64,000 nucleotides of DNA from Selaginella moellendorffii (GCF_000143415.4 NW_003314350.1:186001-250000); one strand, 5' to 3'. Positions 30,936 through 61,119 are shown, numbered from the stretch's first letter. Notes: generated by a model not told the origin, from the sequence alone. Numbers and translations: made by a program.

Positions 30936-31979
30936 ATGGCTGCAATCGTGTTGATGATTGCGTTTCTCGTGATGGCTGCAGCATGGAAGATGGTGTGTAT
31001 CCGCAAGAGAGAAGAGAGGGCACGATTTCTAGCGTCGCTCCACCCCGTGAGAGACGCACACAAGATCTTGTGGTACATGTACTCGGTGGAATTCCCCTTC
31101 CTCTCGCAAAAGGCGCTCGAGTTTGGCACAATCCGCACGCTCGGCATCCCGGGGATCACAAATCTGCTCTTCAAGACCAAGTACGGCCTCAAGGATCCGC
31201 AGAAGCGCGCCGCCCAGACCAACATTCTGGTGAGCGAGATGATCCACCACCACGTCGACAGCGATCGCGGCTCATACGCGGTGAGGAGATTGAATGGAAT
31301 CCACAACAAATTCAAGATCCCAAACGACCAATTCGCCTACGTCCTCTGCCTCAACGTGGTCGGCCCCATTGATTTCTCCGAGAGATTTGGATTCCGCAAG
31401 TGGACCGACAACGAGAAGGAGGCCGCGTATGTTGTGTGGCACGACGTGGGCGTGAGGATGGGCATCACAACCATCCCAGATAGCATTCCAGAGATGCGGG
31501 AGTACATTCGCGATTACGAGGCCAAGAACGCCATCTTCACGGACAAGAACAAGAGCATCGTCCAGGATCTCAAGCATCTGGTGCTGGATGCATTTCCTCG
31601 CCCCGTGCAGCCGCTGGTCGAGACTGGGATCTGTGCACTCATCGATCCCACAATCAGGAGCGCTGTTGGATTGGAAAAGCCTCCAGCAATTGTGGAGTGG
31701 ATCATCTTGGGTGCGTTCAAGCTGCTGGCCGGGAGCTTCGTCTCCGCGTTCTTGCCTCCCAGACGTGTGGAGGACGCAAAGGGCAGCATTGAGGTGGACT
31801 GGTGTCCTAATCCCGCTGCCAATCCGGAAGAGTACCGGCAGCTCAACGTGAATGTGTATCGGCCACCAGCATTCGAGAAGGGATACAAGCTGGCGGAGCT
31901 GGGAGCGCTGAAATCAGGCAAGCTTGGACCATACTACGATGGAGGCTTGCGCTGCCCCTTCCGGCAAATGCACGCATAG
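30936..31979 (+). CDS. MpaB/DUF2236 (Lcp-like) ER-bound heme oxygenase, copy 1 (E94Q, S143G vs consensus)
   Basis: Intronless 347 aa with an N-terminal TM anchor. Motifs EFPFLSQKALEFGTIRTLGIPGITNLL, PQKRxxxT, RRLNGIH..F.IPND.F.YVL, RFGFRKWT..EK.A...W..VG.RMGI..IP, GYKLAELG and C-terminal CPF match the MpaB/DUF2236 pattern. Confidence 0.85.
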   Translation: MAAIVLMIAFLVMAAAWKMVCIRKREERARFLASLHPVRDAHKILWYMYSVEFPFLSQKALEFGTIRTLGIPGITNLLFKTKYGLKDPQKRAAQTNILVSEMIHHHVDSDRGSYAVRRLNGIHNKFKIPNDQFAYVLCLNVVGPIDFSERFGFRKWTDNEKEAAYVVWHDVGVRMGITTIPDSIPEMREYIRDYEAKNAIFTDKNKSIVQDLKHLVLDAFPRPVQPLVETGICALIDPTIRSAVGLEKPPAIVEWIILGAFKLLAGSFVSAFLPPRRVEDAKGSIEVDWCPNPAANPEEYRQLNVNVYRPPAFEKGYKLAELGALKSGKLGPYYDGGLRCPFRQMHA

Positions 31980-32149
31980 AAATAGAACGGGCATAGGACA
32001 TTCGTTCGGAGAACAAAGCATCATTTGAAAATGCGTAGTTTACGTGAATCTTTTTGTAATTTTTGCAGAACAATATGGGATCCAAACAATTTAGAAACAC
32101 GCTCTGGCTAAAGACAATGATTCTAAGATATTACAGGTTGTAGTTAGAA

Positions 32150-35100
32150 GTCCAAGTTGACACGCTCACTTTACACCTAAGAGAAGGAAAAGTTTGTCAA
32201 GCGGAAGGAACAAAGGTCAAAAGCTTACCTCCACGAGAAAACTTCACGTTAATCCATGGGGCCTCAGCACGGCGCATGCCCACCATCAGGTGCAAACTGC
32301 CAAACTTTCCTTGGAGTCCAGCGCCACACTCACTGGCCAATCAGGATACCCGAGTACAACTTGAGCTCTCCCACTGAGATGGCTGCAAAGCCGCTTTCAA
32401 AGCTCGGCATCCCCCATGCCTATGCAAGGCAACAGACTCTAAACACACGAACAAAACACACCTTGGTACGTTCAAGGCAAAAGACTTTAAACACACGACA
32501 AAAACTCACCTTGGAGCAGTAGTACAACCGGCCAACAGGGTGCAACCCATCCGGAATCGTAAGGTCCTTCGATAACAAGGATGCTCCCCAGGCTGCAAAC
32601 TTATCCCGAACCTCCTGCTTCGTGAAGGCCTCTTCCGATATCGGCTCTCTGGGTGAGTCAGGGAACGAATGCAGAGAAGCTTCAACCAGCTGGTTTCCCT
32701 TGACCTGCACATATCCATCGATCTCAGAAATGGCATATCGCCATTCCCTCATGTCCATGGCATACACAAAACAAACGGAAATTGATTTCAAAACACGAAA
32801 CTAGAAACTGGTACATACATGAAGATATGTTGGAGGTCTTGCTTGCTTCTCTAAGCTGGCAGTGATCCACGTACATGAAAACCTGTACCAGATCTTAACG
32901 CAGATTTCAGATACTAACCAGCTTTACATAGCAGATCGCGGTGCTTCACATCAATTCCCAATCTTAGTGTACGCAATCCAGGATCGGAATGCCAATCAAG
33001 CCCTCCTCAGAGGAGGTGACATCGTTAGTAGGTTGATCAATGCCATCATGTGGAAACTCCAGGTCCAGAAAAACGGCCTCCTCATCCTGTGCCTCCTCAT
33101 CCTCCTCCAACTCTAAGCCCATCTCTAACTGGAACTCCCGCCACTCTGGTTCTTGCTCATCGTGCTTACACTCTGCCTTGTACAGCATGAAAAGGGCAAA
33201 TGAACACAAGAGCCTAGAGAAAATGCTTGCCGGCCCTTGTCTTGGAAAACCAATGTGGCGTACACATCTTTAACCTCCAACTACACGCACGGCGCTCTCC
33301 CTTCCTGGAAACATCTTTCGATTATACCTGGAATGTCGAGAAACTTAGACACAAGACGAGGTCAAGAATCCTTACCGATCATAGGGAGGCGTGGCATCTG
33401 GGAGCCTGTACCGCTTCTTAAATTGCTCTTCAGTAATCTTGCTAGGTGACACTTGGAATAGTGGTGCTTCTTGCTGTAGCGCTGCGAGTTGTGCTGTGGG
33501 AGCAACTCCTTGAGCAGAGCCCTAATGTGTTCCAAAGACGAACCAAAACCTGCATCCCTCTGTTTCTTATGAGCTGCCCCCCTCCACCTCGTCTGACTTT
33601 GGTGACTCTCTTTTGGTGATGACGGCATTGCCGTATATGATCGCGGTCACCGACTGGGTGATTCCACCTCGATTTTCGATCTGACATTGCCTACATGGTT
33701 TGAAACAATGTTTTAGCAAAGCTTTTGAAGTTTAGACAAAGTCCATTGAGCTCAAAGAACCTAGACATGAAAGGTTCTAGGAAGAACTTGGATCACTGTC
33801 ACAATCTTGCAATCCTTTGAGACTGCCCAGATGTTCGTCTGGGCAGCTCATAGTGTGGAATAAGTCAAATATTTGTCACCCAGCCTGTCAGCTAGAGCAA
33901 CTACCAAACAACAAAGAGACTTGGAACAAGATCTTTCTTAGGAAGTGGCAGACATCCCTAGATTGCAGGAGTTGTGTTGCTGCTTTATGCAAGCTTGTAT
34001 TACCCTAGAAAGGTGTAATGAACAAACTTAGTATATCTAACATGTGCAATGCTTCCCTGATCTCTTGCTAACACAACCTGGTTACTCTTTGCTTGCTAAT
34101 GGCAGCCTCACAATGCAAAACAAGCACATGCACATGACCCAGCCTCACAGCACACTGCAGATGCTGATGTGAAATTGCTTCCCACTTTTATTCTCTACCT
34201 TTGAGATTCTTGGGATCTCAGGAAATGATCTTGTCCTCATCTTCAAACACCATAAGTAGTTTGCCATGGTGGCAGCCTCTTTGCTTGGACAAAAGTGGCA
34301 TGAGTTACAAGGAAACATACACTTCTACAGTTTTCTTATTGGTAACTTTAGCTTTAAAAGGGGACTCTGTTTGAGATCTGTGACTCACAAAATAATCTTT
34401 ATAGATAGAAATTTTCAAACATACATCTTGCAATATAATTGAATTAGTACTTGCCCAGCAAATACTGGATGAATATAAAAATAAATTTTATACACCTGAG
34501 TGAGAGCTGAGTGCATGTGATATTCAAGTGTTGAGTGTTCAAGTCTTGAAGAATGTTGTAGGGCTGTGTTTCCACTTTTTGTGTGACAGCTTAGCTAGGG
34601 TAGTTATTTTGGGATCAGGGACTGGTTTATCTTGGTTAATTGTAGCTGGAGGATCTGATCTTGGCTGCTCGCTCTCTCTTTTATCCTTGCAGTTCTTTTT
34701 GTGATTTTCTCTAGGTTTTCCTCCTCCTCAGCATCATCAAATACAGAGTTTTTCCTCCTCCTCAACATCATGAAATATAGAGTTCTCCATATGCTAATGC
34801 TGTTGTGCCCATGTCATAACTTTAGATTTTGGTGCAGCTTGTTGGATGAAAATTGCATTGCTTTCTACTTGGCTTAAGCTTGTGTAGGCAATTGTCCTGC
34901 ATATGCAAGCCTTGTGTCTGACAGATTCCACATATAGGCTAGTACCTAATCTGTTTCCTCGGATGCTGGCTTGTAGCTCATTGTCTGAATTGGAGGAGAC
35001 AATGGGTGTTGAAAGAAAACTAGTGCTCAAGCCGAAGATGGCAGTGATGATGGCAAGGTCTTGATAGGAGATTTCTTGGCTTGTAAAAATAATCTTCCTT

Positions 35101-36992
35101 TGAAATAGATCATTTGAAGTAAACATTTGAAGAAAGGTGATGGCCATCAAGCCATATACACGGTCAATGAGAGCATCGTCCATTGTTACGTGCTGTGTTG
35201 AGTTGCTATAAGTGGATATCAACCGACCATGTACACATATAACCATGAAAAAAGGATGGTCATTGTTGCACTCAATGCAGTGTCCAATCTGCAAGTTAAT
35301 CCTAGATAGCCAAAATTTGTGGCAAACACACCAGCCCAAGGACACAGAGATGTCTTGAGAGGCAAAAGGAATTAAGCATCCCTTTATCTTAAATGAATAA
35401 ATATAAGCCATTGAACAAATAAATATGACATACATACCCCATTAAAGTCTCTTTGATACATAGAAGTTATGGATTTCAAGTGGTCATGAATTGCATTCCA
35501 TGGTGCTAGTCCAGGCACATTGTAAACTATAGTTGGAGGTCCAATCTTGGAAATATTATGATCACTTGTTCCTTCGATGTCGTGAAATATTTTGAGTGGC
35601 ATGTGACGTCCAAACCATTCTGATTTGACTTTATGATACACGAAAGACATACATGCTGCAACTTGAACCAGAGTATGGTAGTTATTATTAACAGCTGTAT
35701 TGAAAGCTCAAGCATACCTTGTAAATATACTCAAAGTCGTTAGCATGTTTCTGCTCTGCTCATTTAGGTCAACTGAGGAAGTATGCTGCAACAGTGCAAA
35801 ATGCTGATCATGTGGTTTCTAGCATGAGATCATGCAAAAGAACCAAGTTGGATATAGGAATTATATCAAGCATAGGTGGCCTCAGTGGTGGGAACTCACA
35901 AACCAGGGAGGAAGCAATAATATCAATAGCAAATCTAAAGGAATAGACCACCAAACATATCAGCAATATGTTGAGAAAGAGAAGCTGTAGCAATATGAAC
36001 ACCACCAATATCAGTGAAGTCAACATTGGGGGAGGTGGTAGAGCTAGTTCTCCACAAGCTGTTGCAGAAGCCATCATAAGTTCCATAGCAAGATAGGGTG
36101 TATAGTAGCAATGGCGAGCTCCAGATAGCAGCTGCAAGTTAGCAATTTGATCCACTAAAGAATGGCCACTGGTTTGAAAATGCTACTTGTAATAGAACAC
36201 CACAGATTATCTTGTGATATGTCACTAATGTCACGCTTTGCTGTGTCAAAAAATAGTAAGAAAATATCACCCAAAAAATGTTTTTTTACATAGTGCTACC
36301 ATTGAATCAAAAGTTGAAGTGAAGTAATCCACATGTAGTTTCGTAAGAATTTTGTAAGAAACCATGTTAAGAGAAAACCATGTACCTGTTGAAATAAATG
36401 CCATCACAGTGGTAAGTGTTGCATGGTTGGCATGAAATAAACATACCACTAATGTCAAGTATGCTATTAGAACTTTTGCCAACTAAAATGCAAATTAAAA
36501 TATCATTTGAAAGAAAAAGTGTAGCATACCACTATTGTGAGGAGCACCACTTGACTTTACATTAAATTTGATTAATCAAAAAAGCAAAAATGTCAGTAAT
36601 ACATACTAGGAATGTTGTGGTGCTTGGTGACATTAGGTTTCGTTGCAACACAGTTCACAGCTGCGTCATTATTATCCCCAAGCTCAGTGGTTGCTATAGC
36701 ATTCTTACAATGTTAAAGGAAAGTTTTGGTTATAATGGAAATTATACCTGGGTGTAAGTTCAAGAACTTGCTACATACATTGTCAAGAGTTTGATCTGAT
36801 GAATGAGACTTGCTATTGTGAACCTCCTGAACCTGTGATGTGCTAGAAATGTAGTCAACTGCATCATCACTTGAAGACGACAGACTAAAACAAAGAAGAA
36901 CTTTTGGAATGTTGAAAGCCTAAAAAACATATGGTAAATGGGACCAATGCATGTACTAATATTGACACATTGCATGGAGGCAGCCATTGCTG
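32150..36992 (-). pseudogene. Decayed multi-exon gene of unknown family (possibly TE-derived), repeated in each unit
   Basis: Minus-strand coding-like fragments are bounded by GT/AG sites, e.g. SSSDDAVDYISSTSQVQEVHNSKSHSSDQTLDNVCSKFLNLHP, MDDALIDRVYGLMAITFLQMF, LELEEDEEAQDEEAVFLDLEFPHDG and WRYAISEIDGYVQVKGNQLVEASLH. They are broken by many stops, frameshifts and unit-specific deletions. Confidence 0.55.
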
Positions 36993-37054
36993 TTGCAGAA
37001 GAATGATCTGAACAATCCAAAGAGTAGCAGCAGCAACACTGCAGCCTGATGCAT
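36993..37054 (-). pseudogene. 5' fragment of the MES gene (first ~21 codons)
   Basis: Matches 29799-29860 (MHQAAVLLLLLFGLFRSFFCN), then switches to spacer sequence. Confidence 0.85.
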
Positions 37055-38025
37055 CTCCTTAGTGCACTCACCGAGATTCTCACCAAATTGGAGAAGCTGA
37101 ACAAGCTGCTGCTTACCGTTGAATCAAAGGGCAATTGCTACACCAAGCAACCATGCGCTTGCCATGTTTGGGGACAACATTACTGTTGCAATTACTCTTA
37201 ACCAAGCTTGTGCTGTTAAGCTTCAAGAGACCCTCGTGGTAGTAAGAAGCTGCCAAATCACATCAAGTCACAGTTACCCAATGTCCAGGTCAACAGCCTT
37301 CTTGATGGGCGGCCAGGCCTGAATCGAGCTTCACCCTCGAGCAGCCCACTCCATGGATCTAGCTGCTAGTGATGTCATCCATCCGGCATGGCCGCTCCAA
37401 GAGCTTTATACCAAATGCATAGAAGTTGATCTATAATAACCATGACTTTAAATTGAAAAATAAATAATATAAAAGAAAATCAACTTGACCATATACCTTT
37501 TAGAAAATTCTACATTATTCATTACAATAAAAATACATTATTTATTTAAATCTCTTTATAAATATGAATAAACCGAGAAATTATATTATATGGTATTTCT
37601 TGAAATTATGCTAGATTAAACTTTATATTAGTTTAAGAGAAACAACTTTGGTAAATAACGAATATACTAATTTAAATATAGTTTATCTCTGGTTTCTACT
37701 GCATCTTTTGTAATTAAGGAACCAGAATCCAGTTCTAAACGTGAAACGTTCAAGTTGGTAGGACCGATAAATTGCATGGACCAGATAACTGTATGGAAAA
37801 CGTGCAGCGTATAAAACAACAACATTTCTCTACAAGCATGTGGCTATGTGTGTAACGTACAGAATACAGATCACATGGAAATAAGAAACGTGAAATATGA
37901 TCTCTAATAGCTCTGATAGTATAAAAGACCCTTCTCCAGCCTCTGTTTCCTCAACCCACAGAGGAGTAGAAAACATTCTCCAATCAAGTTGATCAGATCG
38001 ATCAAACAGTTTTCACCATTTCGAA

Positions 38026-39069
38026 ATGGCTGCAATCGTGTTGATGATTGCGTTTCTCGTGATGGCTGCAGCATGGAAGATGGTGTGTATCCGCAAGAGA
38101 GAAGAGAGGGCACGATTTCTAGCGTCGCTCCACCCCGTGAGAGATGCACACAAGATCTTGTGGTACATGTACTCGGTGGAATTCCCCTTCCTCTCGCAAA
38201 AGGCGCTCGAGTTTGGCACAATCCGCACGCTCGGCATCCCGGGGATCACAAATCTGCTCTTCAAGACCAAGTACGGCCTCAAGGATCCGCAGAAGCGCGC
38301 CGCCGAGACCAACATTCTGGTGAGCGAGATGATCCACCACCACGTCGACAGCGATCGCGGCTCATACGCGGTGAGGAGATTGAATGGAATCCACAACAAA
38401 TTCAAGATCCCAAACGACCAATTCGCCTACGTCCTCTGCCTCAACGTGGTCAGCCCCATTGATTTCTCCGAGAGATTTGGATTCCGCAAGTGGACCGACA
38501 ACGAGAAGGAGGCCGCGTATGTTGTGTGGCACGACGTGGGCGTGAGGATGGGCATCACAACCATCCCAGATAGCATTCCAGAGATGCGGGAGTACATTCG
38601 CGATTACGAGGCCAAGAACGCCATCTTCACGGACAAGAACAAGAGCATCGTCCAGGATCTCAAGCATCTGGTGCTGGATGCATTTCCTCGCCCCGTGCAG
38701 CCGCTGGTCGAGACTGGGATCTGTGCACTCATCGATCCCACAATCAGGAGCGCTGTTGGATTGGAAAAGCCTCCAGCAATTGTGGAGTGGATCATCTTGG
38801 GTGCGTTCAAGCTTCTGGCCGGGAACTTCGTGTCCGCGTTCTTGCCTCCCAGACGTGTGGAGGATGCAAAGGGCAGCATTGAGGTGGACTGGTGTCCTAA
38901 TCCCGCTGCCAATCCGGAGGATTACCGGCAGCTCAACGTGAATGTGTATCGGCCACCAGCATTCGAGAAGGGATACAAGCTGGCGGAGCTGGGAGCGCTG
39001 AAATCAGGCAAGCTTGGACCATACTATGATGGAGGCTTGCGCTGCCCCTTCCGGCAAATGCACGCATAG
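38026..39069 (+). CDS. MpaB/DUF2236-like oxygenase, copy 2 (S267N, E299D)
   Basis: Intact 347-aa ORF nearly identical to copy 1. Confidence 0.85.
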   Translation: MAAIVLMIAFLVMAAAWKMVCIRKREERARFLASLHPVRDAHKILWYMYSVEFPFLSQKALEFGTIRTLGIPGITNLLFKTKYGLKDPQKRAAETNILVSEMIHHHVDSDRGSYAVRRLNGIHNKFKIPNDQFAYVLCLNVVSPIDFSERFGFRKWTDNEKEAAYVVWHDVGVRMGITTIPDSIPEMREYIRDYEAKNAIFTDKNKSIVQDLKHLVLDAFPRPVQPLVETGICALIDPTIRSAVGLEKPPAIVEWIILGAFKLLAGNFVSAFLPPRRVEDAKGSIEVDWCPNPAANPEDYRQLNVNVYRPPAFEKGYKLAELGALKSGKLGPYYDGGLRCPFRQMHA

Positions 39070-42000
39070 AATAGGACATTCGTTCGGAGAACAAAGCATC
39101 ATTTAAAAATGATGAATCTTTTTGTAATTTGCAGATAGCACAAAACCATTATTAATAGTACGGGATCCAAACAATTTAGAAACACAGAGACAAAAATATT
39201 GCAGGTTGTAGTTAGAAGTCTAAGTTGACACGCTCGCTTACACCTAAGAGAACGAAAAGCTTGTCAAGCGGAAGGAATAAAGATCAAAAGCTTACCTCCA
39301 CGAGAAAACCTCACGTTAATCCATGGGGCTAGCATGCCCACCATCAGGTGCGAACTACCAAACTTTCCTTCGAGTCCAGCGCCGCACTCACTGGCCAATC
39401 AGGATACCCGAGTACAACTTGAGCTCTCCCACTGAGATGGCTGCAAAGCCGCTTTCAAAGCTCGGCATCCCCCATGCCTGTTCAAGGCAACAGACTTTAA
39501 ACACACGACAAAAACTCACCTTGGAGCAACCGGCCAACAGGGTGCGACCCATCCGGAATCGTAATGTCCTCCGATAACAAGGATGCTCTCCAGGCTGCAA
39601 ACTTATCCCGAACCTCCTGCGTGGTGAAGGCGCGTGTGAACTCTTCCGAGATCGGCTCTGTGGGTGAGTCAGGGAACTAATGCAGAGAAGCTTCAACCAG
39701 CTGGTTTCCCTTGACCTGCACATATCCATCGATCTCAGAAATGGCATATCGCCATTCCCTCATGTCCATGGCATACACAAAACAAACAGAAATTGATTTC
39801 AAAACACGAAACTAGAAACTGGTACATACATGAAGATATGTTGGAGGTCTTGCTTGCTTCCCTAAGCTGGCAGTGATCCACGTACATGAAAACCTGTACC
39901 AGATCTTAGCGCAGATTTCAGATACTAACCAGCTTTACATACCTGTAGCAGATCGCGGTGCTTCACATCAATTCCCAATCTTAGTGTACGCACATCCAGG
40001 ATCGAGGTGGTGAACGCTAGAATGCCTGAATGCCAATCAAGCTCGGCCTGTTCCTCCTCAGAGGAGGTGACATCGTTAGTAGGTTGATCAATGCCATCAT
40101 GTGGAAACTCCAGGTCCAGAAAAACGGCCTCCTCATCCTGTGCCTCCTCATCCTCCTCCAACTCTAAGCCCATTTCTAACTGGAACTCCCCTCACTCTGG
40201 TTCCTGCTCATCGTGCTTACACTCTGCCTTGTACAGCATGAAAAGGGCACATGAACACAAGAGCCTAGAGAAAATGCTTGCCGGCCCTTGTCTTGGAAAA
40301 CCAATGTGGCGTACACATCTTTAACCTCCAACTACACGCACGGCGCTCTCCCTCCTGGAAACACCTTTCGATTATACCTGGAATGTCGAGAAACTTAGAC
40401 ACAAGACAAGGTCGAGAATCCTTACCGATCATAGGGAGGCGTGGCATCTGGTATCTGTTCGATCAGCCCGTACCTCTTCTTAAATTGCTCTTCAGTAATC
40501 TTGCTAGGTGACAGTTGGAATAGTGGTGCTTCTTGCTGTAGCGCTGCGAGTTGTGCTTTGGGAGCAACTCCTTGAGCAGAGCCCTAATGTGTTCCAAAGA
40601 CGAACCAAAACCTGCATCCCTCTGTTTCTTATGAGCTGCCCCCCTCCACCTCTTCTGACTTTGGTGCCTCTCTTTTGGTGATGACGGCATTGCCGTATAT
40701 GATCGCGGTCACGGACTTGCCCCGAGGATGGGTGATTCCACCTCGATTTTCGATCTGACATTGCTTGCCACAATCTACATGGAATCAAGGAGTTTGAAAC
40801 AATGCTTCAGCAAACTCTTAAGCTTTGAAGTGTAGACAAAGTCCATCGAGCTCAAAGAACCTAGACATGAAAGGTTCTTGGAAGGATAGTGAGAACTTGG
40901 ATCGCTGTCACAATCTTGCAATCCTTTGAGACTGCCCAGATGTTCGTTTGGGCAGCTCACAGTGTGGAATAAGTCAAATATTTGTCACCCAGCTCGTCAG
41001 CCAGAGCAACTACCAAACAAGATGGTATTTGAGTGGTCCCAAGGAGACTTGGAACAAGATCTTTCCTAGGAAGTGGTAGACATCCCTAGATTGCAGGAGC
41101 TGTGCTGCTACTTTATGCAAGCTTGTACCCTAGAAAGGTGTAATGAACAAACTTAGTATATCTAATATGTGCAATGCTTCCTTGATATCTTGCTAACACA
41201 GTTCAGTTGCTCTTTGCTTGTGAATGGCAGCTTCACAATGCAAAACAAGCACATGCACATGGCCCAGCCTCACAACACACTGCAGATGCTAATGTGGAAT
41301 CTCACTCACAGGAATGTAGAATCCCCAAGGGTGGGGTGGGGTGAGGCTCAGCCTAACCATCACTCCCCATTGCTTCCCACTTTTATTCTTTAACTTTGAG
41401 ATTCTCGGGATCTCAAGAAATGATCTTGTCCTCATCCTCAAACACCATAAGTAGTTTGCAATGGTGGCAGCCTCCTTGCTTGGGCAAAAGTGGCATGAGT
41501 TACAAGGAAACATACACTTTTACAGTTTTCTTCTTGGTAACCTTAGCTTTAAAAGGGGACTCTATTTGAGATCTGTGACTCACAAAATAATCTTTATAGA
41601 TACAAATTTTCAAACATACATCTTGCAATATAATTGAATTAGTACTTGCCCAGCAAATGTTGGGTGAATATAAAAATAAATTTTATGAGCAAATGTGATA
41701 ATCAGGCGTTGACTGTCCAAGTCTTGAAGAATGTTGTAAGGCTGTGTTTCCAAATTCAGCACGTGTTTCCACTTTTTGTGTAACAGCTTAGCCAGAGTAG
41801 TTATTTTGGGATCAGGGATTGGTTTATCTTGGTTAATTGTAGCTGAAGGATCTAATCTTGGCTGCTTGCTCTCTCTTTTCTCCTTGCGGTTCTTTATACT
41901 GATGCTACTGTGCCCGTGTCATAACTCTAGATTCTAGTGCAGCTTGTTGGATGAAAATTGCATTGCTTTCTACTTGGCTTAAGCTTGTGCAAGCAATTGT

Positions 42001-46232: not shown

Positions 46233-47276
46233 ATGGCTGCAATCGTGTTGATGATTGCGTTTCTCGTGATGGCTGCAGCATGGAAGATGGTGTGTATCCG
46301 CAAGAGAGAAGAGAGGGCACGATTTCTAGCGTCGCTCCACCCCGTGAGAGACGCACACAAGATCTTGTGGTACATGTACTCCGTGGAATTCCCCTTCCTC
46401 TCGCAAAAGGCGCTCGAGTTTGGCACAATCCGCACGCTCGGCATCCCGGGGATCACAAATCTGCTCTTCAAGACCAAGTACGGCCTCAAGGATCCGCAGA
46501 AGCGCGCCGCCGAGACCAACATTCTGGTGAGCGAGATGATCCACCACCACGTCGACAGCGATCGCGGCTCATACGCGGTGAGGAGATTGAATGGAATCCA
46601 CAACAAATTCAAGATCCCAAACGACCAATTCGCCTACGTCCTCTGCCTCAACGTGGTCAGCCCCATTGATTTCTCCGAGAGATTTGGATTCCGCAAGTGG
46701 ACCGACAACGAGAAGGAGGCCGCGTATGTTGTGTGGCACGACGTGGGCGTGAGGATGGGCATCACAACCATCCCAGATAGCATTCCAGAGATGCGGGAGT
46801 ACATTCGCGATTACGAGGCCAAGAACGCCATCTTCACGGACAAGAACAAGAGCATCGTCCAGGATCTCAAGCATCTGGTGCTGGATGCATTTCCTCGCCC
46901 CGTGCAGCCGCTGGTCGAGACTGGGATCTGTGCACTCATCGATCCCACAATCAGGAGCGCTGTTGGATTGGAAAAGCCTCCAGCAATTGTGGAGTGGATC
47001 ATCTTGGGTGCGTTCAAGCTGCTGGCCGGGAGCTTCGTCTCCGCGTTCTTGCCTCCCAGACGTGTGGAGGACGCAAAGGGCAGCATTGAGGTGGACTGGT
47101 GTCCTAATCCCGCTGCCAATCCGGAAGAGTACCGGCAGCTCAACGTGAATGTGTATCGGCCACCAGCATTCGAGAAGGGATACAAGCTGGCGGAGCTGGG
47201 AGCGCTGAAATCAGGCAAGCTTGGACCATACTACGATGGAGGCTTGCGCTGCCCCTTCCAGCAAATGCACGCATAG
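46233..47276 (+). CDS. MpaB/DUF2236-like oxygenase, copy 3 (R343Q)
   Basis: Intact 347-aa ORF nearly identical to the other copies. Confidence 0.85.
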   Translation: MAAIVLMIAFLVMAAAWKMVCIRKREERARFLASLHPVRDAHKILWYMYSVEFPFLSQKALEFGTIRTLGIPGITNLLFKTKYGLKDPQKRAAETNILVSEMIHHHVDSDRGSYAVRRLNGIHNKFKIPNDQFAYVLCLNVVSPIDFSERFGFRKWTDNEKEAAYVVWHDVGVRMGITTIPDSIPEMREYIRDYEAKNAIFTDKNKSIVQDLKHLVLDAFPRPVQPLVETGICALIDPTIRSAVGLEKPPAIVEWIILGAFKLLAGSFVSAFLPPRRVEDAKGSIEVDWCPNPAANPEEYRQLNVNVYRPPAFEKGYKLAELGALKSGKLGPYYDGGLRCPFQQMHA

Positions 47277-50200: not shown

Positions 50201-51183
50201 AAGTTTTTTTTCTAATAATTTATATTGATGTATTTACCTCGGTTCAAAGGCCATAACTTTAGAGATCCCATTTACAGTGGCTAACAAAAGAGAGCGGCCT
50301 TCTGGGTAAGGATTGTCTTTACAAAGTTTGACAGCCATAGATAAATTAGTTGAAGTAAACATTTGAAGAAAGGTGATGGCTATCAAGCCATATACACAGT
50401 CAATGAGAGCATCATCCATTGTTACGTGCTGTGTTGAGTTGCTATGAGTGGATATCCACCAGCTATGTACACATATAACCATGAAAAAAGGATGGTCATC
50501 ATTGCACTCGATGCAGTGTCTAATCTGCAAGTTAATCCTAGATAGCCGAAATTTGTGGCAAACACACCAGCCTAGGGACACAGAGATGTCTCGAGAGGCA
50601 AAAGGAATTAAGCATCCCTTTATCTTAAATGAATAAATATAAGCCATTGAAGAAATAAATATGACATACATAAACCATCAAAGTCTCTTTGATACATAGA
50701 AGTTATGGATTTCAAGTGGTCATGAATTGCATTTTATGGCACTAGTCCAGGCACATTGTAAGCTATAGTTGGAGGTCCAATCTTGGAAGCATCATGATCA
50801 CTTGCTCCTTCGATGTTGTGAAATATTTTGAGTGGCATTTGACGTCCAAACCATTCTGATTTGACTTTATCATACATGAAAGACATACATGCTGCAACTT
50901 GAACCTAAGTATGGTAGTTGTTATTAACAACAGTATTGAAAGCTCAAGCATACCTTGTAAATATACTCAAAGTCGTTACCATGTTTGTGCTCTACTCATT
51001 TAGGTCAACTGAGGAAGTATGCTGCAGCAGTGTAAAATGCTGATCGTGTGGCTTCTAGCGTGAAATCATGCAAAAGAACCAAGTTGGATATAGGAATTAT
51101 ATTAAGCATAGGTGGCCTCAGTGGTGGGAACTCACAAACTAGGGAGGAAGCAATAATATCAATAGCAAATCTAAAGGAATAGA

Positions 51184-51926
51184 NNNNNNNNNNNNNNNNN
51201 NNNNNNNNNNNNNNNNNNNNNNNNNNNNNNNNNNNNNNNNNNNNNNNNNNNNNNNNNNNNNNNNNNNNNNNNNNNNNNNNNNNNNNNNNNNNNNNNNNNN
51301 NNNNNNNNNNNNNNNNNNNNNNNNNNNNNNNNNNNNNNNNNNNNNNNNNNNNNNNNNNNNNNNNNNNNNNNNNNNNNNNNNNNNNNNNNNNNNNNNNNNN
51401 NNNNNNNNNNNNNNNNNNNNNNNNNNNNNNNNNNNNNNNNNNNNNNNNNNNNNNNNNNNNNNNNNNNNNNNNNNNNNNNNNNNNNNNNNNNNNNNNNNNN
51501 NNNNNNNNNNNNNNNNNNNNNNNNNNNNNNNNNNNNNNNNNNNNNNNNNNNNNNNNNNNNNNNNNNNNNNNNNNNNNNNNNNNNNNNNNNNNNNNNNNNN
51601 NNNNNNNNNNNNNNNNNNNNNNNNNNNNNNNNNNNNNNNNNNNNNNNNNNNNNNNNNNNNNNNNNNNNNNNNNNNNNNNNNNNNNNNNNNNNNNNNNNNN
51701 NNNNNNNNNNNNNNNNNNNNNNNNNNNNNNNNNNNNNNNNNNNNNNNNNNNNNNNNNNNNNNNNNNNNNNNNNNNNNNNNNNNNNNNNNNNNNNNNNNNN
51801 NNNNNNNNNNNNNNNNNNNNNNNNNNNNNNNNNNNNNNNNNNNNNNNNNNNNNNNNNNNNNNNNNNNNNNNNNNNNNNNNNNNNNNNNNNNNNNNNNNNN
51901 NNNNNNNNNNNNNNNNNNNNNNNNNN
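51184..51926. other. Assembly gap (743 N)
   Basis: Run of N. The flanks match spacer positions 35947 and 36698 of unit 1, which have 750 bp between them. Confidence 1.
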
Positions 51927-52245
51927 AGCATTCTTACAATGTTAAAGGAAAGTTTTGGTTATAATGGAAATTATACCTGTGTGTAAGTTCAAGAACTTGT
52001 TACATATGTCGTCAAGAGTTTGATCTCATGAATGAGACTTGCTATTGTGAACCTCATGAACCTGTGATGTGCTAGAAATGTAGTCACCTGCATCATCACT
52101 TGAAGACAACACTGTACTTTCCATCCTTGGCAACAGACAAAAACAAAGAAGAACTTTTGGAATGTTGAAAGCCTAAGAAACATATGGTAAATGTGCCCAA
52201 TGCATGTCCTAATATTGACACATTGCATGGAGGCAGCTGCTGCTG

Positions 52246-52307
52246 TTGCAGAAGAATGATCCAAACAATCCAAAGAGTAGCAGCAGCAACACTACAGCCT
52301 GATGCAT
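52246..52307 (-). pseudogene. 5' fragment of the MES gene
   Basis: Matches 29799-29860. Confidence 0.85.
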
Positions 52308-53420
52308 CTCCTTAGTGCACTCACCGAGATTCTCACCAAATTGGAGAAGCAGAACAGGCTGCTGCTTACCGTTGAATCAAAGGGCAATTGCTACACCAAG
52401 CATATATATGTTGGAGCTGTCAACGTGGAAAGCAAGGGAGCAAACTGTAAGGCTTTTTCTATTATGACTTTCCAATTTATGATAAAATATGGCAATTCCA
52501 ATTTATTACAAAGAGTGTCAACCGTTTGTTCCTAGCTTAGTAAACCCCTAACCATGCGCGTGCCATGTTTGGGGACAACATTACTGTTGCAATTACTCTT
52601 AACCAAGCTTGTGCTGTTAAGCTTCAAGAGACCCTCGTGGTAGTAAGAAGCTGCCAAATCACTTCAAGTCACAGTTACCCAATGTCCAGGTCAACAGCCT
52701 TCTTGATGGGCAGCCAGGCCTGAATCGAGCTTCACCCTCGAGCAGCCCACTCCATGGATCTAGCTGCCAGTGATGTCATCCATCTGGTATGGCCGCTCCA
52801 AGAGCTTTATACCAAATGCATAGAAGTTGATCTATAATAACCATGACTTTAAATTGAAAAATAAATAATATAAAAGAAAATAAACTTGACCATATACCTT
52901 TTAGAAAATTCTAGATTATTTATTACAATAAAAATACATTATTTATTTAAATCTCTTATAAATATGAATAAACCGAGAAACCATATTGTATTATACGGTA
53001 TTTCTTGAAATTATGCTAGATTAAACTGTATACTAGTTTAAGAGAAACAACCAAAAAAACTTTGGTTATACTAATTTAAATATAGTTTATCTCTGGTTTC
53101 TACTGCATCTTTTATAAAATCTGTAACCGAATCCTGTTCTAAACGTGAAACGTTCAAGTTGGTAGGACCGATAAATTGCATGGACCAGATAACTGTATGG
53201 AAAACGTGCACCGTATAAAACAACAAGATTCCTCTCCAAGTATGTGGCTATGTGTGTAACGTACAAAATACGGATCACACGGAAATAAAAAAACGTGGCT
53301 GATAGCTCGGATAGTATAAAAGACCCTTCTCCAGCCTCTGTTTCCTCAACCCACAGAGGAGTAGAAAACATTCTCCAATCAAGTTGATCAGATCGATCAA
53401 ACAGTTTTCACCATTTCGAA

Positions 53421-54464
53421 ATGGCTGCAATCGTGTTGATGATTGCGTTTCTCGTGATGGCTGCAGCATGGAAGATGGTGTGTATCCGCAAGAGAGAAGA
53501 GAGGGCACGATTTCTAGCGTCGCTCCACCCCGTGAGAGACGCACACAAGATCCTGTGGTACATGTACTCGGTGGAATTCCCCTTCCTCTCGCAAAAGGCG
53601 CTCGAGTTTGGCACAATCCGCACGCTGGGCATCCCGGGGATCACAAATCTGCTCTTCAAGACCAAGTACGGCCTCAAGGATCCGCAGAAGCGCGCCGCCG
53701 AGACCAACATTCTGGTGAGCGAGATGATCCACCACCACGTCGACAGCGATCGCGGCTCGTACGCGGTGAGGAGATTGAATGGAATCCACAACAAATTCAA
53801 GATCCCAAACGACCAATTCGCCTACGTCCTCTGCCTCAACGTGGTCAGCCCCATTGATTTCTCCGAGAGATTTGGATTCCGCAAGTGGACCGACAACGAG
53901 AAGGAGGCCGCGTATGTTGTGTGGCACGACGTGGGCGTGAGGATGGGCATCACAACCATCCCAGATAGCATTCCAGAGATGCGGGAGTACATTCGCGATT
54001 ACGAGGCCAAGAACGCCATCTTCACGGACAAGAACAAGAGCATCGTCCAGGATCTCAAGCATCTGGTGCTGGATGCATTTCCTCGCCCCGTGCAGCCGCT
54101 GGTCGAGACTGGGATCTGTGCACTCATCGATCCCACAATCAGGAGCGCTGTTGGATTGGAAAAGCCTCCAGCAATTGTGGAGTGGATCATCTTGAGTGCG
54201 TTCAAGCTGCTGGCCGGGAGCTTCGTGTCCGCGTTCTTGCCTCCCAGACGTGTGGAGGATGCAGAGGGCAGCATTGAGGTGGACTGGTGTCCTAATCCCG
54301 CTGCCAATCCGGAAGAGTACCGGCAGCTCAACGTGAATGTGTATCGGCCACCAGCATTCGAGAAGGGATACAAGCTGGCGGAGCTGGGAGCGCTGAAATC
54401 AGGCAAGCTTGGACCATACTACGATGGAGGCTTGCGCTGCCCCTTCCGGCAAATGCACGCATAG
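53421..54464 (+). CDS. MpaB/DUF2236-like oxygenase, copy 4 (G259S, K282E)
   Basis: Intact 347-aa ORF nearly identical to the other copies. Confidence 0.85.
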   Translation: MAAIVLMIAFLVMAAAWKMVCIRKREERARFLASLHPVRDAHKILWYMYSVEFPFLSQKALEFGTIRTLGIPGITNLLFKTKYGLKDPQKRAAETNILVSEMIHHHVDSDRGSYAVRRLNGIHNKFKIPNDQFAYVLCLNVVSPIDFSERFGFRKWTDNEKEAAYVVWHDVGVRMGITTIPDSIPEMREYIRDYEAKNAIFTDKNKSIVQDLKHLVLDAFPRPVQPLVETGICALIDPTIRSAVGLEKPPAIVEWIILSAFKLLAGSFVSAFLPPRRVEDAEGSIEVDWCPNPAANPEEYRQLNVNVYRPPAFEKGYKLAELGALKSGKLGPYYDGGLRCPFRQMHA

Positions 54465-57400
54465 AAATAGAACGGGCATAGGACATTCGTTTGGAGAACA
54501 AAGCATCATTTGAAAATGCGTAGTTTACGTGAATCTTTTTGTAATTTTTGCAGAACAATATGGGATCCAAACAATTTAGAAACACGCTCTGGCTAAAGAC
54601 AATGATTCTAAGATATTACAGGTTGTAGTTAGAAGTCTAAGTTGACACGCTCACTTTACACCTAAGAGAAGGAAAAGCTTGTCAAGCGAAAGGAACAAAG
54701 GTCAAAAGCTTACCTCCACGAGAAAACTTCACGTTAATCCATGGGGCCTCAGCACGGCGCATGCCCACCATCAGGTGCAAACTGCCAAACTTTCCTTGGA
54801 GTCCAGCGCCACACTCACTGGCCAATCAGGATACCCGAGTACAACTTGAGCTCTCCCACTGAGATGGCTGCAAAGCCGCTTTCAAAGCTCGGCATCCCCC
54901 ATGCCTATGCAAGGCAACAGACTCTAAACACACGAACAAAACACACCTTGGTACGTTCAAGGCAAAAGACTTTAAACACACGACAAAAACTCACCTTGGA
55001 GCAGTAGTACAACCGGCCAACAGGGTGCAACCCATCCGGAATCGTAAGGTCCTTCGATAACAAGGATGCTCCCCAGGCTGCAAACTTATCCCGAACCTCC
55101 TGCTTCGTGAAGGCCTCTTCCGATATCGGCTCTCTGGGTGAGTCAGGGAACGAATGCAGAGAAGCTTCAACCAGCTGGTTTCCCTTGACCTGCACATATC
55201 CATCGATCTCAGAAATGGCATATCGCCATTCCCTCATGTCCATGGCATACACAAAACAAACAGAAATTGATTTCAAAACACGAAACTAGAAACTGGTACA
55301 TACATGAAGATATGTTGGAGGTCTTGCTTGCTTCTCTAAGCTGGCAGTGATCCACGTACATGAAAACCTGTACCAGATCTTAACGCAGATTTCAGATACT
55401 AACCAGCTTTACATAGCAGATCGCGGTGCTTCACATCAATTCCCAATCTTAGTGTACGCAATCCAGGATCGGAATGCCAATCAAGCCCTCCTCAGAGGAG
55501 GTGACATCGTTAGTAGGTTGATCAATGCCATCATGTGGAAACTCCAGGTCCAGAAAAACGGCCTCCTCATCCTGTGCCTCCTCATCCTCCTCCAACTCTA
55601 AGCCCATCTCTAACTGGAACTCCCGCCACTCTGGTTCTTGCTCATCGTGCTTACACTCTGCCTTGTACAGCATGAAAAGGGCAAATGAACACAAGAGCCT
55701 AGAGAAAATGCTTGCCGGCCCTTGTCTTGGAAAACCAATGTGGCGTACACATCTTTAACCTCCAACTACACGCACGGCGCTCTCCCTTCCTGGAAACATC
55801 TTTCGATTATACCTGGAATGTCGAGAAACTTAGACACAAGACGAGGTCAAGAATCCTTACCGATCATAGGGAGGCGTGGCATCTGGGAGCCTGTACCGCT
55901 TCTTAAATTGCTCTTCAGTAATCTTGCTAGGTGACACTTGGAATAGTGGTGCTTCTTGCTGTAGCGCTGCGAGTTGTGCTGTGGGAGCAACTCCTTGAGC
56001 AGAGCCCTAATGTGTTCCAAAGACGAACCAAAACCTGCATCCCTCTGTTTCTTATGAGCTGCCCCCCTCCACCTCGTCTGACTTTGGTGACTCTCTTTTG
56101 GTGATGACGGCATTGCCGTATATGATCGCGGTCACCGACTGGGTGATTCCACCTCGATTTTCGATCTGACATTGCTTGCCACAATCTACATGGTTTGAAA
56201 CAATGCTTTAGCAAAGCTTTTGAAGTTTAGACAAAGTCCATTGAGCTCAAAGAACCTAGACATGAAAGGTTCTAGGAAGAACTTGGATCACTGTCACAAT
56301 CTTGCAATCCTTTGAGACTGCCCAGATGTTCGTCTGGGCAGCTCATAGTGTGGAATAAGTCAAATATTTGTCACCCAGCCTGTCAGCCAGAGCAACTACC
56401 AAACAACAAAGAGACTTGGAACAAGATCTTTCTTAGGAAGTGGCAGACATCCCTAGATTGCAGGAGTTGTGTTGCTGCTTTATGCAAGCTTGTATTACCC
56501 TAGAAAGGTGTAATGAACAAACTTAGTATATCTAACATGTGCAATGCTTCCCTGATCTCTTGCTAACACAACCTGGTTACTCTTTGCTTGCTAATGGCAG
56601 CCTCACAATGCAAAACAAGCACATGCACATGACCCAGCCTCACAGCACACTGCAGATGCTGATGTGAAATTGCTTCCCACTTTTATTCTCTACCTTTGAG
56701 ATTCTTGGGATCTCAGGAAATGATCTTGTCCTCATCTTCAAACACCATAAGTAGTTTGCCATGGTGGCAGCCTCTTTGCTTGGACAAAAGTGGCATGAGT
56801 TACAAGGAAACATACACTTCTACAGTTTTCTTATTGGTAACTTTAGCTTTAAAAGGGGACTCTGTTTGAGATCTGTGACTCACAAAATAATCTTTATAGA
56901 TAGAAATTTTCAAACATACATCTTGCAATATAATTGAATTAGTACTTGCCCAGCAAATACTGGATGAATATAAAAATAAATTTTATACACCTGAGTGAGA
57001 GCTGAGTGCATGTGATATTCAAGTGTTGAGTGTCCAAGTCTTGAAGAATGTTGTAGGGCTGTGTTTCCACTTTTTGTGTGACAGATTAGCTAGGGTAGTT
57101 ATTTTGGGATCAGGGACTGGTTTATCTTGGTTAATTGTAGCTGGAGGATCTGATCTTGGCTGCTCACTCTCTCTTTTATCCTTGCAGTTCTTTCTTGTGA
57201 TTTTCTCTAGGTTTTCCTCCTCCTCAGCATCATCAAATACAGAGTTTTTCCTCCTCCTCAACATCATGAAATATAGAGTTCTCCATATGCTAATGCTGTT
57301 GTGCCCATGTCATAACTTTAGATTTTGGTGCAGCTTGTTGGATGAAAATTGCATTGCTTTCTACTTGGCTTAAGCTTGTGTAGGCAATTGTCCTGCATAT

Positions 57401-60075
57401 GCAAGCCTTGTGTCTGACAGATTCCACATATAGGCTAGTACCTAATCTGTTTCCTCGGATGCTGGCTTGTAGCTCATTGTCTGAATTGGAGGAGACAATG
57501 GGTGTTGAAAGAAAACTAGTGCTCAAGCCGAAGATGGCAGTGATGATGGCAAGGTCTTGATAGGAGATTTCTTGGCTTGTAAAAATAATCTTCCTTTGAA
57601 ATAGATCATTTGAAGTAAACATTTGAAGAAAGGTGATGGCCATCAAGCCATATACACAGTCAATGAGAGCATTGTCCATTGTTACGTGCTGTGTTGAGTT
57701 GCTACAAGTGGATATCAACCGACCATGTACACATATAACCATGAAAAAAGGATGGTCATTGTTGCACTCAATGCAGTGTCCAATCTGCAAGTTAATCCTA
57801 GATAGCCAAAATTTGTGGCAAACACACCAGCCCAAGGACACAGAGATGTCTCGAGAGGCAAAAGGAATTAAGCATCCCTTTATCTTAAATGAATAAATAT
57901 AAGCCATTGAACAAATAAATATGACATACATACCCCATTAAAGTCTCTTTGATACATAGAAGTTATGGATTTCAAGTGGTCATGAATTGCATTCCATGGT
58001 GCTAGTCCAGGCACATTGTAAACTATAGTTGGAGGTCCAATCTTGGAAATATTATGATCACTTGTTCCTTCGATGTCGTGAAATATTTTGAGTGGCATGT
58101 GACGTCCAAACCATTCTGATTTGACTTTATGATACACGAAAGACATACATGCTGCAACTTGAACCAGAGTATGGTAGTTATTATTAACAGCTGTATTGAA
58201 AGCTCAAGCACACCTTGTAAATATACTCAAAGTCGTTAGCATGTTTCTGCTCTGCTCATTTAGGTCAACTGAGGAAGTATGCTGCAACAGTGCAAAATGC
58301 TGATCATGTGGTTTCTAGCGTGAGATCATGCAAAAGAACCAAGTTGGATATAGGAATTATATCAAGCATAGGTGGCCTCAGTGGTGGGAACTCACAAACC
58401 AGGGAGGAAGCAATAATATCAATAGCAAATCTAAAGGAATAGACCACCAAACATATCAGCAATATGTTGAGAAAGAGAAGCTGTAGCAATATGAACACCA
58501 CCAATATCAGTGAAGTCAACATTGGGGGAGGTGGTAGAGCTAGTTCTCCACAAGCTGTTGCAGAAGCCATCATAAGTTCCATAGCAAGATAGGGTGTATA
58601 GTAGCAATGGCGAGCTCTAGATAGCAGCTGCAAGTTAGCAATTTGATCCACTAAAGAGTGGCCACTGGTTTGAAAATGCTACTTGTAATAGAACACCACA
58701 GATTATCTTGTGATATGTCACTAATGTCACGCTTTGCTGTGTCAAAAAATAGTAAGAAAATATCACCCAAAAAATGTTTTTTTACATAGTGCTACCATTG
58801 AATCAAAAGTTGAAGTGAAGTAATCCACATGTAGTTTCGTAAGAATTTTGTAAGAAACCATGTTAAGAGAAAACCATGTACCTGTTGAAATAAATGCCAT
58901 CACAGTGGTAGGTGTTGCATGGTTGGCATGAAATAAACATACCACTAATGTCAAGTATGCTATTAAAACTTTTGCCAACTAAAATGCAAATTAAAATATC
59001 ATTTGAAAGAAAAAGTGTAGCATACCACTATTGTGAGGAGCACCACTTGACTTTACATTAACTTTGATTAATCAAAAAAGCAAAAATGTCAGTAATACAT
59101 ACTAGGAATGTCGTGGTGCTTGGTGACATTAGGTTTCGTTGCAACACAGTTCACAGCTGCGTCATTATTATCCCCAAGCTCAGTGGTTGCTATAGCATTC
59201 TTACAATGTTAAAGGAAAGTTTTGGTTATAATGGAAACTATACCTGGGTGTAAGTTCAAGAACTTGCTACATACGTTGTCAAGAGTTTGATCTGATGAAT
59301 GAGACTTGCTATTGTGAACCTCCTGAACCTGTGATGTGCTAGAAATGTAGTCAACTGCATCATCACTTGAAGACGACAGACTAAAACAAAGAAGAACTTT
59401 TGGAATGTTGAAAGCCTAAGAAACATATGGTAAATGGGACCAATGCATGTACTAATATTAGAAAATGCATAGAAGTTGATCTATAATAACCATGACTTTA
59501 AATTGAAAAATAAATAATATAAAAGAAAATCAACTTGACCATATACCTTTTAGAAAATTCTACATTATTCATTACAATAAAAATACATTATTTATTTAAA
59601 TCTCTTTATAAATATGAATAAACCGAGATATTATATTATATGGTATTTCTTGAAATTATGCTAGATTAAACTTTATATTAGTTTAAGAGAAACAACTTTG
59701 GTAAATAACGAATATACTAATTTAAATATGGTTTATCTCTGGTTTCTACTGCATCTTTTGTAATTAAGGAACCAGAATCCAGTTCTAAACGTGAAACGTT
59801 CAAGTTGGTAGGACCGATAAATTGCATGGACCAGATAACTGTATGGAAAACATGCACCGTATAAAACAACAAGATTTCTCTACAAGCATGTGGCTATGTG
59901 TGTAACGTACAGAATACGGATCACACGGAAATAAAAAACGTGAAATATGATCTCTAATAGCTCTGATAGTATAAAAGACCCTTCTCCAGCCTCTGTTTCC
60001 TCAACCCACAGAGGAGTAGAAAACATTCTCCAATCAAGTTGATCAGATCGATCAAACAGTTTTCACCATTTCGAA

Positions 60076-61119
60076 ATGGCTGCAATCATGTTGATGATTG
60101 CGTTTCTCGTGATGGCTGCAGCATGGAAGATGGTGTGTATCCGCAAGAGAGAAGAGAGGGCACGATTTCTAGCGTCGCTCCACCCCATGAGAGACGCACA
60201 CAAGATCTTGTGGTACATGTACTCGGTGGAATTCCCCTTCCTCTCGCAAAAGGCGCTCGAGTTTGGCACAATCCGCACGCTCGGCATCCCGGGGATCACA
60301 AATCTGCTCTTCAAGACCAAGTACGGCCTCAAGGATCCGCAGAAGCGCGCCGCCGAGACCAACATTCTGGTGAGCGAGATGATCCACCACCACGTCGACA
60401 GCGATCGCGGCTCGTACGCGGTGAGGAGATTGAATGGAATCCACAACAAATTCAAGATCCCAAACGACCAATTCGCCTACGTCCTCTGCCTCAACGTGGT
60501 CAGCCCCATTGATTTCTCCGAGAGATTTGGATTCCGCAAGTGGACCGACAGCGAGAAGGAGGCCGCGTATGTTGTGTGGCACGACGTGGGCGTGAGGATG
60601 GGCATCACAACCATCCCAGATAGCATTCCAGAGATGCGGGAGTACATTCGCGATTACGAGGCCAAGAACGCCATCTTCACGGACAAGAACAAGAGCATCG
60701 TCCAGGATCTCAAGCATCTGGTGCTGGATGCATTTCCTCGCCCCGTGCAGCCGCTGGTCGAGACTGGGATCTGTGCACTCATCGATCCCACAATCAGGAG
60801 CGCTGTTGGATTGGAAAAGCCTCCAGCAATTGTGGAGTGGATCATCTTGGGTGCGTTCAAGCTGCTGGCCGGGAGCTTCGTGTCCGCGTTCTTGCCTCCC
60901 AGACGTGTGGAGGATGCAAAGGGCAGCATTGAGGTGGACTGGTGTCCTAATCCCGCTGCCAATCCGGAAGAGTACCGGCAGCTCAACGTGAATGTGTATC
61001 GGCCACCAGCATTCGAGAAGGGATACAAGCTGGCGGAGCTGGGAGCGCTGAAATCAGGCAAGCTTGGACCATACTACGATGGAGGCTTGCGCTGCCCCTT
61101 CCGGCAAATGCACGCATAG
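60076..61119 (+). CDS. MpaB/DUF2236-like oxygenase, copy 5 (V5M, V38M, N159S)
   Basis: Intact 347-aa ORF nearly identical to the other copies. Confidence 0.85.
   Translation: MAAIMLMIAFLVMAAAWKMVCIRKREERARFLASLHPMRDAHKILWYMYSVEFPFLSQKALEFGTIRTLGIPGITNLLFKTKYGLKDPQKRAAETNILVSEMIHHHVDSDRGSYAVRRLNGIHNKFKIPNDQFAYVLCLNVVSPIDFSERFGFRKWTDSEKEAAYVVWHDVGVRMGITTIPDSIPEMREYIRDYEAKNAIFTDKNKSIVQDLKHLVLDAFPRPVQPLVETGICALIDPTIRSAVGLEKPPAIVEWIILGAFKLLAGSFVSAFLPPRRVEDAKGSIEVDWCPNPAANPEEYRQLNVNVYRPPAFEKGYKLAELGALKSGKLGPYYDGGLRCPFRQMHA

Follow-up and report, generated by a model that had tools for sequence, protein, structure and literature searches.

The window analysed here, 64,000 nucleotides (nt) of nuclear DNA from the lycophyte Selaginella moellendorffii (GCF_000143415.4, NW_003314350.1:186001-250000), carries a tandem array of MpaB-like genes matched by the Pfam family PF09995 (MPAB_Lcp_cat). 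Five complete open reading frames (ORFs) of 347 amino acids (aa) were found, all on the + strand, all intact and all intronless. The gene copies and the features belonging to the array are given below, with positions counted from the first letter of the window.

30936..31979, + strand, MpaB-like gene copy 1: 347 aa, intronless, intact ORF, PF09995 match with E 4e-12
38026..39069, + strand, MpaB-like gene copy 2: 347 aa, used as the query and as the representative for the structure model and the tree
46233..47276, + strand, MpaB-like gene copy 3: ORF of 347 aa, carrying R343Q
53421..54464, + strand, MpaB-like gene copy 4: ORF of 347 aa
60076..61119, + strand, MpaB-like gene copy 5: ORF of 347 aa
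29799..64000, + strand, tandem array: units of 6.7-8.2 kb from ATG to ATG, from self-BLAST
37920..37926, + strand, TATAAAA box: 106 nt upstream of the ATG of copy 2
51184..51926, no strand, assembly gap of 743 N: within the spacer that separates copy 3 from copy 4, outside every gene
63070-64000, sixth unit, upstream part only: 930 nt at the end of the window, beyond which the unit continues, from self-BLAST

The proteins of the five copies were 99% identical, their coding sequences (CDSs) of 1044 nt differed at 4-11 sites, and the stretch of 120 nt ahead of the ATG, including the TATAAAA box, was nearly identical in all five. An earlier note on this DNA had described one intronless gene of 347 aa; the length and the lack of introns hold, and the span that it covered contains five copies, not one. 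The gene is already present in public databases as uncharacterised: the 347-aa NCBI model LOC112349549 was 99% identical to the query protein, and a paralogue on another scaffold of S. moellendorffii, named 'mycophenolic acid synthesis protein B-like' by NCBI, was 69% identical. The array genes are thus amplified members of a known enzyme family.

In the self-BLAST comparison, the spacers of adjacent units were 88-94% identical, and a higher-order repeat of about 22.4 kb was observed, with 97.2% identity between unit 1 and unit 4 and 97.6% between unit 2 and unit 5. The array extends past the end of the window, since a sixth unit begins there.

The assembly gap lies 3.9 kb past the stop codon of copy 3 and 1.5 kb ahead of the ATG of copy 4, and as it falls within a spacer, none of the gene frames relies on it; the ORF of 308 aa listed there consists of X only. 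Some of the copies could be an assembly artefact, in which the repeat of about 22.4 kb represents two haplotypes joined in tandem at the gap, with about three copies per haplotype. The gap is located just ahead of the second copy of the 22-kb repeat, that is, just before unit 4, and the higher identity of units 1/4 and 2/5 (97.2-97.6%) relative to adjacent units (88-94%) would fit such a junction; the assembly of this species is known to contain both haplotypes. However, in self-BLAST the alignment with unit 1 ended at 35947 for the left flank of the gap (50341-51183) and resumed at 36698 for the right flank (51927-52402). The missing length is therefore about 750 nt, nearly the same as the 743 N in the assembly, as would be expected for the colinear continuation of an ordinary unit. 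Copies 1 and 4 also differ at 9 coding sites, and we regard this alternative as unlikely, though worth keeping in mind when copies are counted; joining at the gap would alter the copy number only.

The gene is under purifying selection, with proportions of synonymous (pS) and nonsynonymous (pN) differences among the copies of 0.020 and 0.005 (pN/pS about 0.25), and all five intact ORFs retained the conserved residues described below. Synonymous divergence in the coding region was lower than the divergence of the spacers, which suggests homogenisation by gene conversion besides selection. For expression, 14 runs from 8 studies, labelled as RNA by guess only, held a share of the query approximately equal to the share of the CDS. 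Logan contigs of runs X1 and X6 covered exactly 38026-39069, at depths of about 22 and about 800, with the flanks uncovered, and Logan contigs broke where the copies differ, as would be expected if several copies were transcribed.

Family membership, predicted fold and putative reaction

PF09995 matched all five copies over residues 86-251, with 47-49 bits against a gathering cut-off of 23 and E values of about 1e-12, and an exhaustive HMMER search returned 1197 homologues. In an alignment of 106 eukaryotic and bacterial homologues, R91 and H123 were invariant and T95 was conserved in at least 90%. The N-terminus contains a hydrophobic segment (maximum 19-residue hydropathy 2.48) followed by basic residues; on the same measure, a hydropathy above 1.6 was found in 57% of the eukaryotic versus 9% of the bacterial homologues. 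The AlphaFold model, built with the 106-sequence alignment, was all-helical, with a predicted local distance difference test score (pLDDT) of 92.9, a predicted template modelling score (pTM) of 0.90 and an N-terminal helix at residues 2-34.

The tripeptide CPF was present at residues 340-342 of each copy (39043-39051 of the window in copy 2). A C-terminal Cys-Pro motif was found in 37 of 75 eukaryotic and 15 of 82 bacterial homologues, the eukaryotic carriers including Adiantum, Myrmecia, Batrachochytrium and Pharyngomonas. The motif may serve in heme regulation or as a ligand; the structure model is of low confidence in this part.

In the Foldseek search, trans-anethole oxygenase (TAO; PDB 8s1j) was matched with E 9e-8, template modelling (TM) scores of 0.65/0.74 and a root-mean-square deviation (rmsd) of 2.6 Å, and Lcp (5o1m/5o1l) with probability 1.0 and a TM score of about 0.5 (0.50 for 5o1m); nothing credible besides TAO and Lcp was found in this search. 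TAO was also reached by a family profile (E 5e-19), in which R-x-D-D-T and N-x-I-H lined up with K-R-A-D-D-T and N-K-I-H of TAO; the profile gave no sequence match to Lcp even at E up to 10. The earlier note's description of the protein, with the R91-x-x-x-T95 motif and H123, the N-terminal membrane anchor and the C-terminal CPF, is thereby upheld, as is its family assignment: the array encodes MpaB/Lcp-type, membrane-anchored proteins that are probably heme-dependent, C=C-cleaving oxygenases.

The closest solved structure, TAO of Stenotrophomonas maltophilia (8s1j), was the only PDB entry reached by sequence. TAO, which is also described from Pseudomonas putida JYR-1 (PMC3774712), splits a propenyl C=C bond, with an aldehyde as the product. 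Unlike the array protein, TAO is a bacterial, soluble protein of about 300 aa without an N-terminal membrane helix or a CPF tail, and the identity is about 19-20%. Penicillium MpaB/MpaB' (PMC6900556) belongs to the same Pfam family and is eukaryotic and membrane-associated, as is predicted for the array protein from its membrane helix; MpaB' is an oxygenase bound to the endoplasmic reticulum (ER), where it cuts the farnesyl chain during the synthesis of mycophenolic acid (bioRxiv 10.1101/524025). In contrast to Penicillium MpaB, the array genes have their nearest relatives in ferns, algae and chytrids, not in Eurotiales; Penicillium MpaB was absent among the named matches, where the nearest fungi were chytrids and Basidiobolus. 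None of the mycophenolic acid cluster genes (polyketide synthase, prenyltransferase, P450-hydrolase) was found nearby, the neighbours being further copies, PPR genes, Aha1 and ORC3.

LcpK30 (PDB 5o1l/5o1m) shares the globin-like helical fold and the Pfam domain with the array protein. Its Arg164, Thr168 and His198 are conserved DUF2236 residues beside the heme, with His198 as the proximal ligand (PMC5522427), and the similarly spaced R91, T95 and H123 are their putative counterparts. Lcp differs from the array protein in being a secreted bacterial enzyme with N- and C-terminal caps and polyisoprene as substrate, at 13-17% identity; the array protein begins with an uncleaved-looking hydrophobic anchor in a eukaryotic nuclear gene, which does not match Lcp-type secretion.

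A single N-terminal helix is predicted to anchor the array protein in the ER membrane; because basic residues follow this helix, the catalytic domain probably lies on the cytosolic side. H123 would bind heme b in a pocket that also contains R91 and T95, and the enzyme would carry out O2-dependent cleavage of a C=C bond in a lipophilic substrate, e.g., a propenyl-benzene or a prenyl chain. We infer the heme binding, the ER location, the substrate and the reaction type, the last being modelled on TAO, MpaB' and Lcp. The same MpaB/Lcp fold could serve another role, such as a heme or gas sensor, a peroxidase-like enzyme or an enzyme with a different cofactor, considering that the Lcp fold is globin-like and related to globin-coupled sensors (PMC5522427), that TAO was first described as a flavoprotein (PMC3774712) and that the C-terminal Cys-Pro, a heme-regulatory motif elsewhere, occurs in about half of the eukaryotic members. 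Such a role seems rather improbable, since the three characterised members (Lcp, MpaB' and TAO) all cleave C=C bonds oxidatively, and the Arg, Thr and proximal His needed in Lcp are conserved in the array protein.

A separate observation concerns P0007 of the chytrid Polyrhizophydium stewartii, a much longer homologue (976 aa) with two matched stretches, which may be a fusion or a merged gene model.

Shared intron and relatives of the array genes

Introns at the site corresponding to R150 of the array protein were located in four relatives as follows.

Selaginella paralogue P0002: single intron of 98 nt (GT-AG) at codon 152, phase 2
Adiantum P0004: single intron of 85 nt (GT-AG) at codon 155, phase 2
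Contig L001: intron of 165 nt at the homologous Arg codon, phase 2
Myrmecia bisecta P0045, a multi-intron gene: GT-AG intron, phase 2, codon 174, the only one of its introns solved exactly
38473..38475, + strand, codon R150 of copy 2: uninterrupted here, the phase-2 intron site in the relatives

The introns of P0002, P0004, L001 and P0045 fall in one alignment column within an ungapped stretch. The probability of a chance match is about 1 in 1000 for one single intron against another (about 1040 possible positions) and less than 1 in 100 for a match to one of about 7 Myrmecia introns. The chytrid gene has its intron elsewhere (phase 0, residue 193), and the pedinophyte gene has two introns, both at other positions. 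Since the intron occupies the R150 site in the paralogue, in ferns and in the alga, the intronless state of the array copies is a secondary loss and not a mark of prokaryotic or foreign origin. Between the array and the intron-bearing paralogue, synonymous divergence (dS) was 1.28 and its ratio with nonsynonymous divergence (dN/dS) about 0.18, the high dS indicating that the divergence is old and that the gene has long resided in the lineage.

The best matches outside Selaginella were ferns (E 7e-62 to 1e-58), with identities to the array protein of 36-42% overall: Adiantum nelumboides L7F22_010630 (38% identity, E 7e-62) and the neighbouring genes KP509_24G042500 and KP509_24G042700 of Ceratopteris richardii (36-42%). 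Green-algal homologues were found in [Myrmecia] bisecta (WJX72_000225) and in a pedinophyte (Pedinophyceae). Named fungal homologues were chytrids and Basidiobolus, and other named eukaryotic ones were the choanoflagellate Salpingoeca, the amoebozoan Phalansterium and the heterolobosean Pharyngomonas, whereas the bacterial homologues (e.g., Chloroflexia, Myxococcota) were shorter proteins forming a separate group. The fern and algal PF09995 genes resemble the array genes in length, N-terminal helix and conserved residues; unlike the array copies, which have no intron and are amplified at least 5-fold, they keep introns (one in Adiantum, several in Myrmecia).

A tree of 83 sequences was inferred with IQ-TREE under the LG+C20 posterior mean site frequency (PMSF) mixture model. 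Bacteria and eukaryotes were split with support of 100/92, and the plant part was resolved as (Myrmecia,(P0010,((Ceratopteris x2),(Adiantum, L001, Selaginella x2)))), with supports of 85/72, 98/80 and 100/98, where P0010 is a transcript and L001 a fern-like environmental contig. P0010 was placed between the alga and the vascular plants, yet its nearest named relative is bacterial. The group of Selaginella, Adiantum and L001, excluding Ceratopteris, received 99/90, and the Selaginella stem was long (1.01 changes per site). In approximately unbiased (AU) tests, neither a clade uniting every named sequence of the green lineage (p 0.42) nor fern monophyly with Selaginella outside (p 0.41) was rejected. 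The placement of Selaginella within the ferns may be an artefact or reflect old paralogy.

The two Ceratopteris genes (P0005 and P0006) are closely spaced paralogues, and with such a neighbouring pair in a fern, local duplication of the gene is not confined to Selaginella. A transcript fragment, L003 (Logan DRR778189, 1140 nt), contains a frame break, shares 66% identity with the first 140 residues of the protein and probably comes from another lycophyte. In the literature on DUF2236, PF09995 or MpaB in plants, no study of plant genes was found; only an S. lepidophylla transcript is mentioned, with more than 50% identity (preprint, bioRxiv 10.64898/2026.05.08.723910).

Probable vertical descent, and transfer as the alternative

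We consider it likely that the array derives from an old eukaryotic MpaB-family gene that was inherited vertically in the green lineage, lost its intron and was amplified in Selaginella, and that it encodes an ER-anchored protein probably cleaving C=C bonds with heme b. The ancestral gene would have carried the phase-2 intron at the codon aligned to R150; this intron would have been retained in the Selaginella paralogue, the ferns and the green alga and lost on the lineage leading to the array. Amplification as units of 7-8 kb would have followed, and then probably a further amplification as a block of about 22 kb.

The composition of the genes was compared with that of their surroundings. The GC content at third codon positions (GC3) was 0.72 in the array CDS, 0.70 in the Aha1 exon, 0.57-0.64 in the PPR genes and 0.81 in the paralogue, and the composition is thus ordinary for neighbouring Selaginella coding DNA and not foreign-looking. 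The description 'GC-rich' in the earlier note applies only in a relative sense, as CDS GC is 0.55 and the GC3 is near that of neighbouring genes.

Several points weigh against the account of vertical descent and C=C cleavage. The best tree nests Selaginella among the ferns with Adiantum, unlike the species tree, although the species-tree order was not rejected; the sister position of Myrmecia is only moderately supported (85/72); and the Pedinophyceae fall in an unresolved polytomy and have no intron position in common with the other green members. The named green members comprise only two green algae, two Pteridaceae genera and Selaginella, a distribution that calls for many losses under vertical descent. 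The relatives from which heme binding and alkene cleavage are inferred are distant (13-20% identity), and one of them, TAO, has been described as a flavoprotein (PMC3774712). In addition, two raw RNA-seq runs of 2026, of which about 12% was sampled, had no reads on the CDS, and the runs holding the CDS were classed as RNA by guess; expression is probably conditional.

An ancient transfer, in which an alga, chytrid or protist would have donated the gene to an ancestor of the vascular plants or of some wider green clade and seed plants would later have lost the vertically inherited gene, would account for the patchy known distribution (a lycophyte, Pteridaceae ferns and two chlorophytes), and it agrees with the unresolved backbone of the eukaryotic half of the tree and with the position of P0010 between the alga and the vascular plants despite its bacterial nearest named relative. 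However, the plant sequences are enclosed by no donor clade, the single fungal gene examined has its intron elsewhere, and the intron shared with the chlorophyte, together with a green monophyly that was not rejected, is explained more simply by descent. We give this scenario a minor share of the probability.

A transfer between plants, from ferns to Selaginella or the reverse, would explain why Selaginella groups with Adiantum and L001 without Ceratopteris (99/90), contrary to the species tree. This is very unlikely, as fern monophyly was not rejected (p-AU 0.41), the long Selaginella stem (1.01) means that the placement may be an artefact or old paralogy, and the gene seems to have resided in the genus for long, as indicated by the two divergent Selaginella paralogues and by the transcript reported from S. 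lepidophylla (bioRxiv 10.64898/2026.05.08.723910).

The recent transfer of a fungal or bacterial MpaB/DUF2236 gene straight into the Selaginella lineage, which was the horizontal acquisition proposed in the earlier note, can be set aside as highly improbable. In its favour are the lack of introns in the array, a family known chiefly from fungi and bacteria, and protein-language-model neighbours that were fungal PF09995 clusters, but Selaginella grouped with ferns (100/98) and with no microbe, a chlorophyte was sister, bacteria formed a separate clade, a single green clade was not rejected (p-AU 0.42), the phase-2 intron of the paralogue is common to fern and green alga, GC3 is ordinary, and the dS of 1.28 to the paralogue indicates long residence. 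By the usual signs of horizontal transfer, the genes are not nested in a microbial clade, the family is not absent from related plants and algae (it is present in Adiantum, Ceratopteris, [Myrmecia] bisecta and Pedinophyceae), the paralogue has its intron at the codon used by the fern and green-algal genes, and the composition is host-like. The earlier note had regarded a species-tree-congruent clade of orthologues throughout the streptophytes as evidence for vertical descent; plant orthologues fitting such descent were found among the ferns, which goes largely against transfer. An attractive but wrong claim of microbe-to-plant transfer is thus removed, and an intronless gene alone is weak evidence of transfer.

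With vertical descent as the preferred explanation, a plant branch of the MpaB/TAO/Lcp family is brought out, with green algae, ferns and lycophytes as named members and strong amplification in Selaginella. As a tentative and more doubtful extension, seed-free vascular plants and some green algae may keep a hitherto unstudied class of membrane-bound oxygenases that cleave alkenes with the help of heme and have no relation to the carotenoid cleavage dioxygenases; an intronless copy would have been amplified many-fold in Selaginella for a lineage-specific job. This job could be the conversion of propenyl-benzenes to benzaldehydes, or the trimming of prenyl side chains in specialised metabolism or defence. 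If alkene cleavage is true, it would be a plant route to aldehydes or shortened prenyl chains independent of the known carotenoid cleavage dioxygenases.

Neighbouring genes and spacer features

The array is preceded by plant nuclear genes: two that encode PPR proteins, a homologue of Aha1 and a fragment of ORC3.

243-3809, + strand, PPR protein of 1188 aa with E motif
5654-6292, + strand, N-terminal fragment of ORC3
16659-17618, - strand, exon of Aha1 (Hsp90 co-chaperone)
25105-27114, - strand, PPR protein of 669 aa

The paralogue P0002 lies on scaffold GL377594.1, with LRR kinases and a GDSL lipase as neighbours. Contamination was considered and rejected, given that the array shares its scaffold with the plant PPR, Aha1 and ORC3 genes and that the paralogue lies amid LRR kinases and a GDSL lipase.

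An Rfam search of the window gave no match, and none of the spacer ORFs matched a Pfam family. These include a 213-aa ORF kept in units 1 and 4 (34794-35435 and 57290-57931, both on the - strand), which may be a chance ORF or a decayed element. A unit of 31-34 nt, repeated twice, was observed at the same place in three array units (34716-34784, 49015-49080 and 57212-57280). RNA-seq reads of runs X23 and X24, in which the first mate was always on the + strand, fell on the spacer at 37000-37100 and 39220-40000 and not on copy 2 itself, which suggests an unannotated transcript inside the repeat unit.

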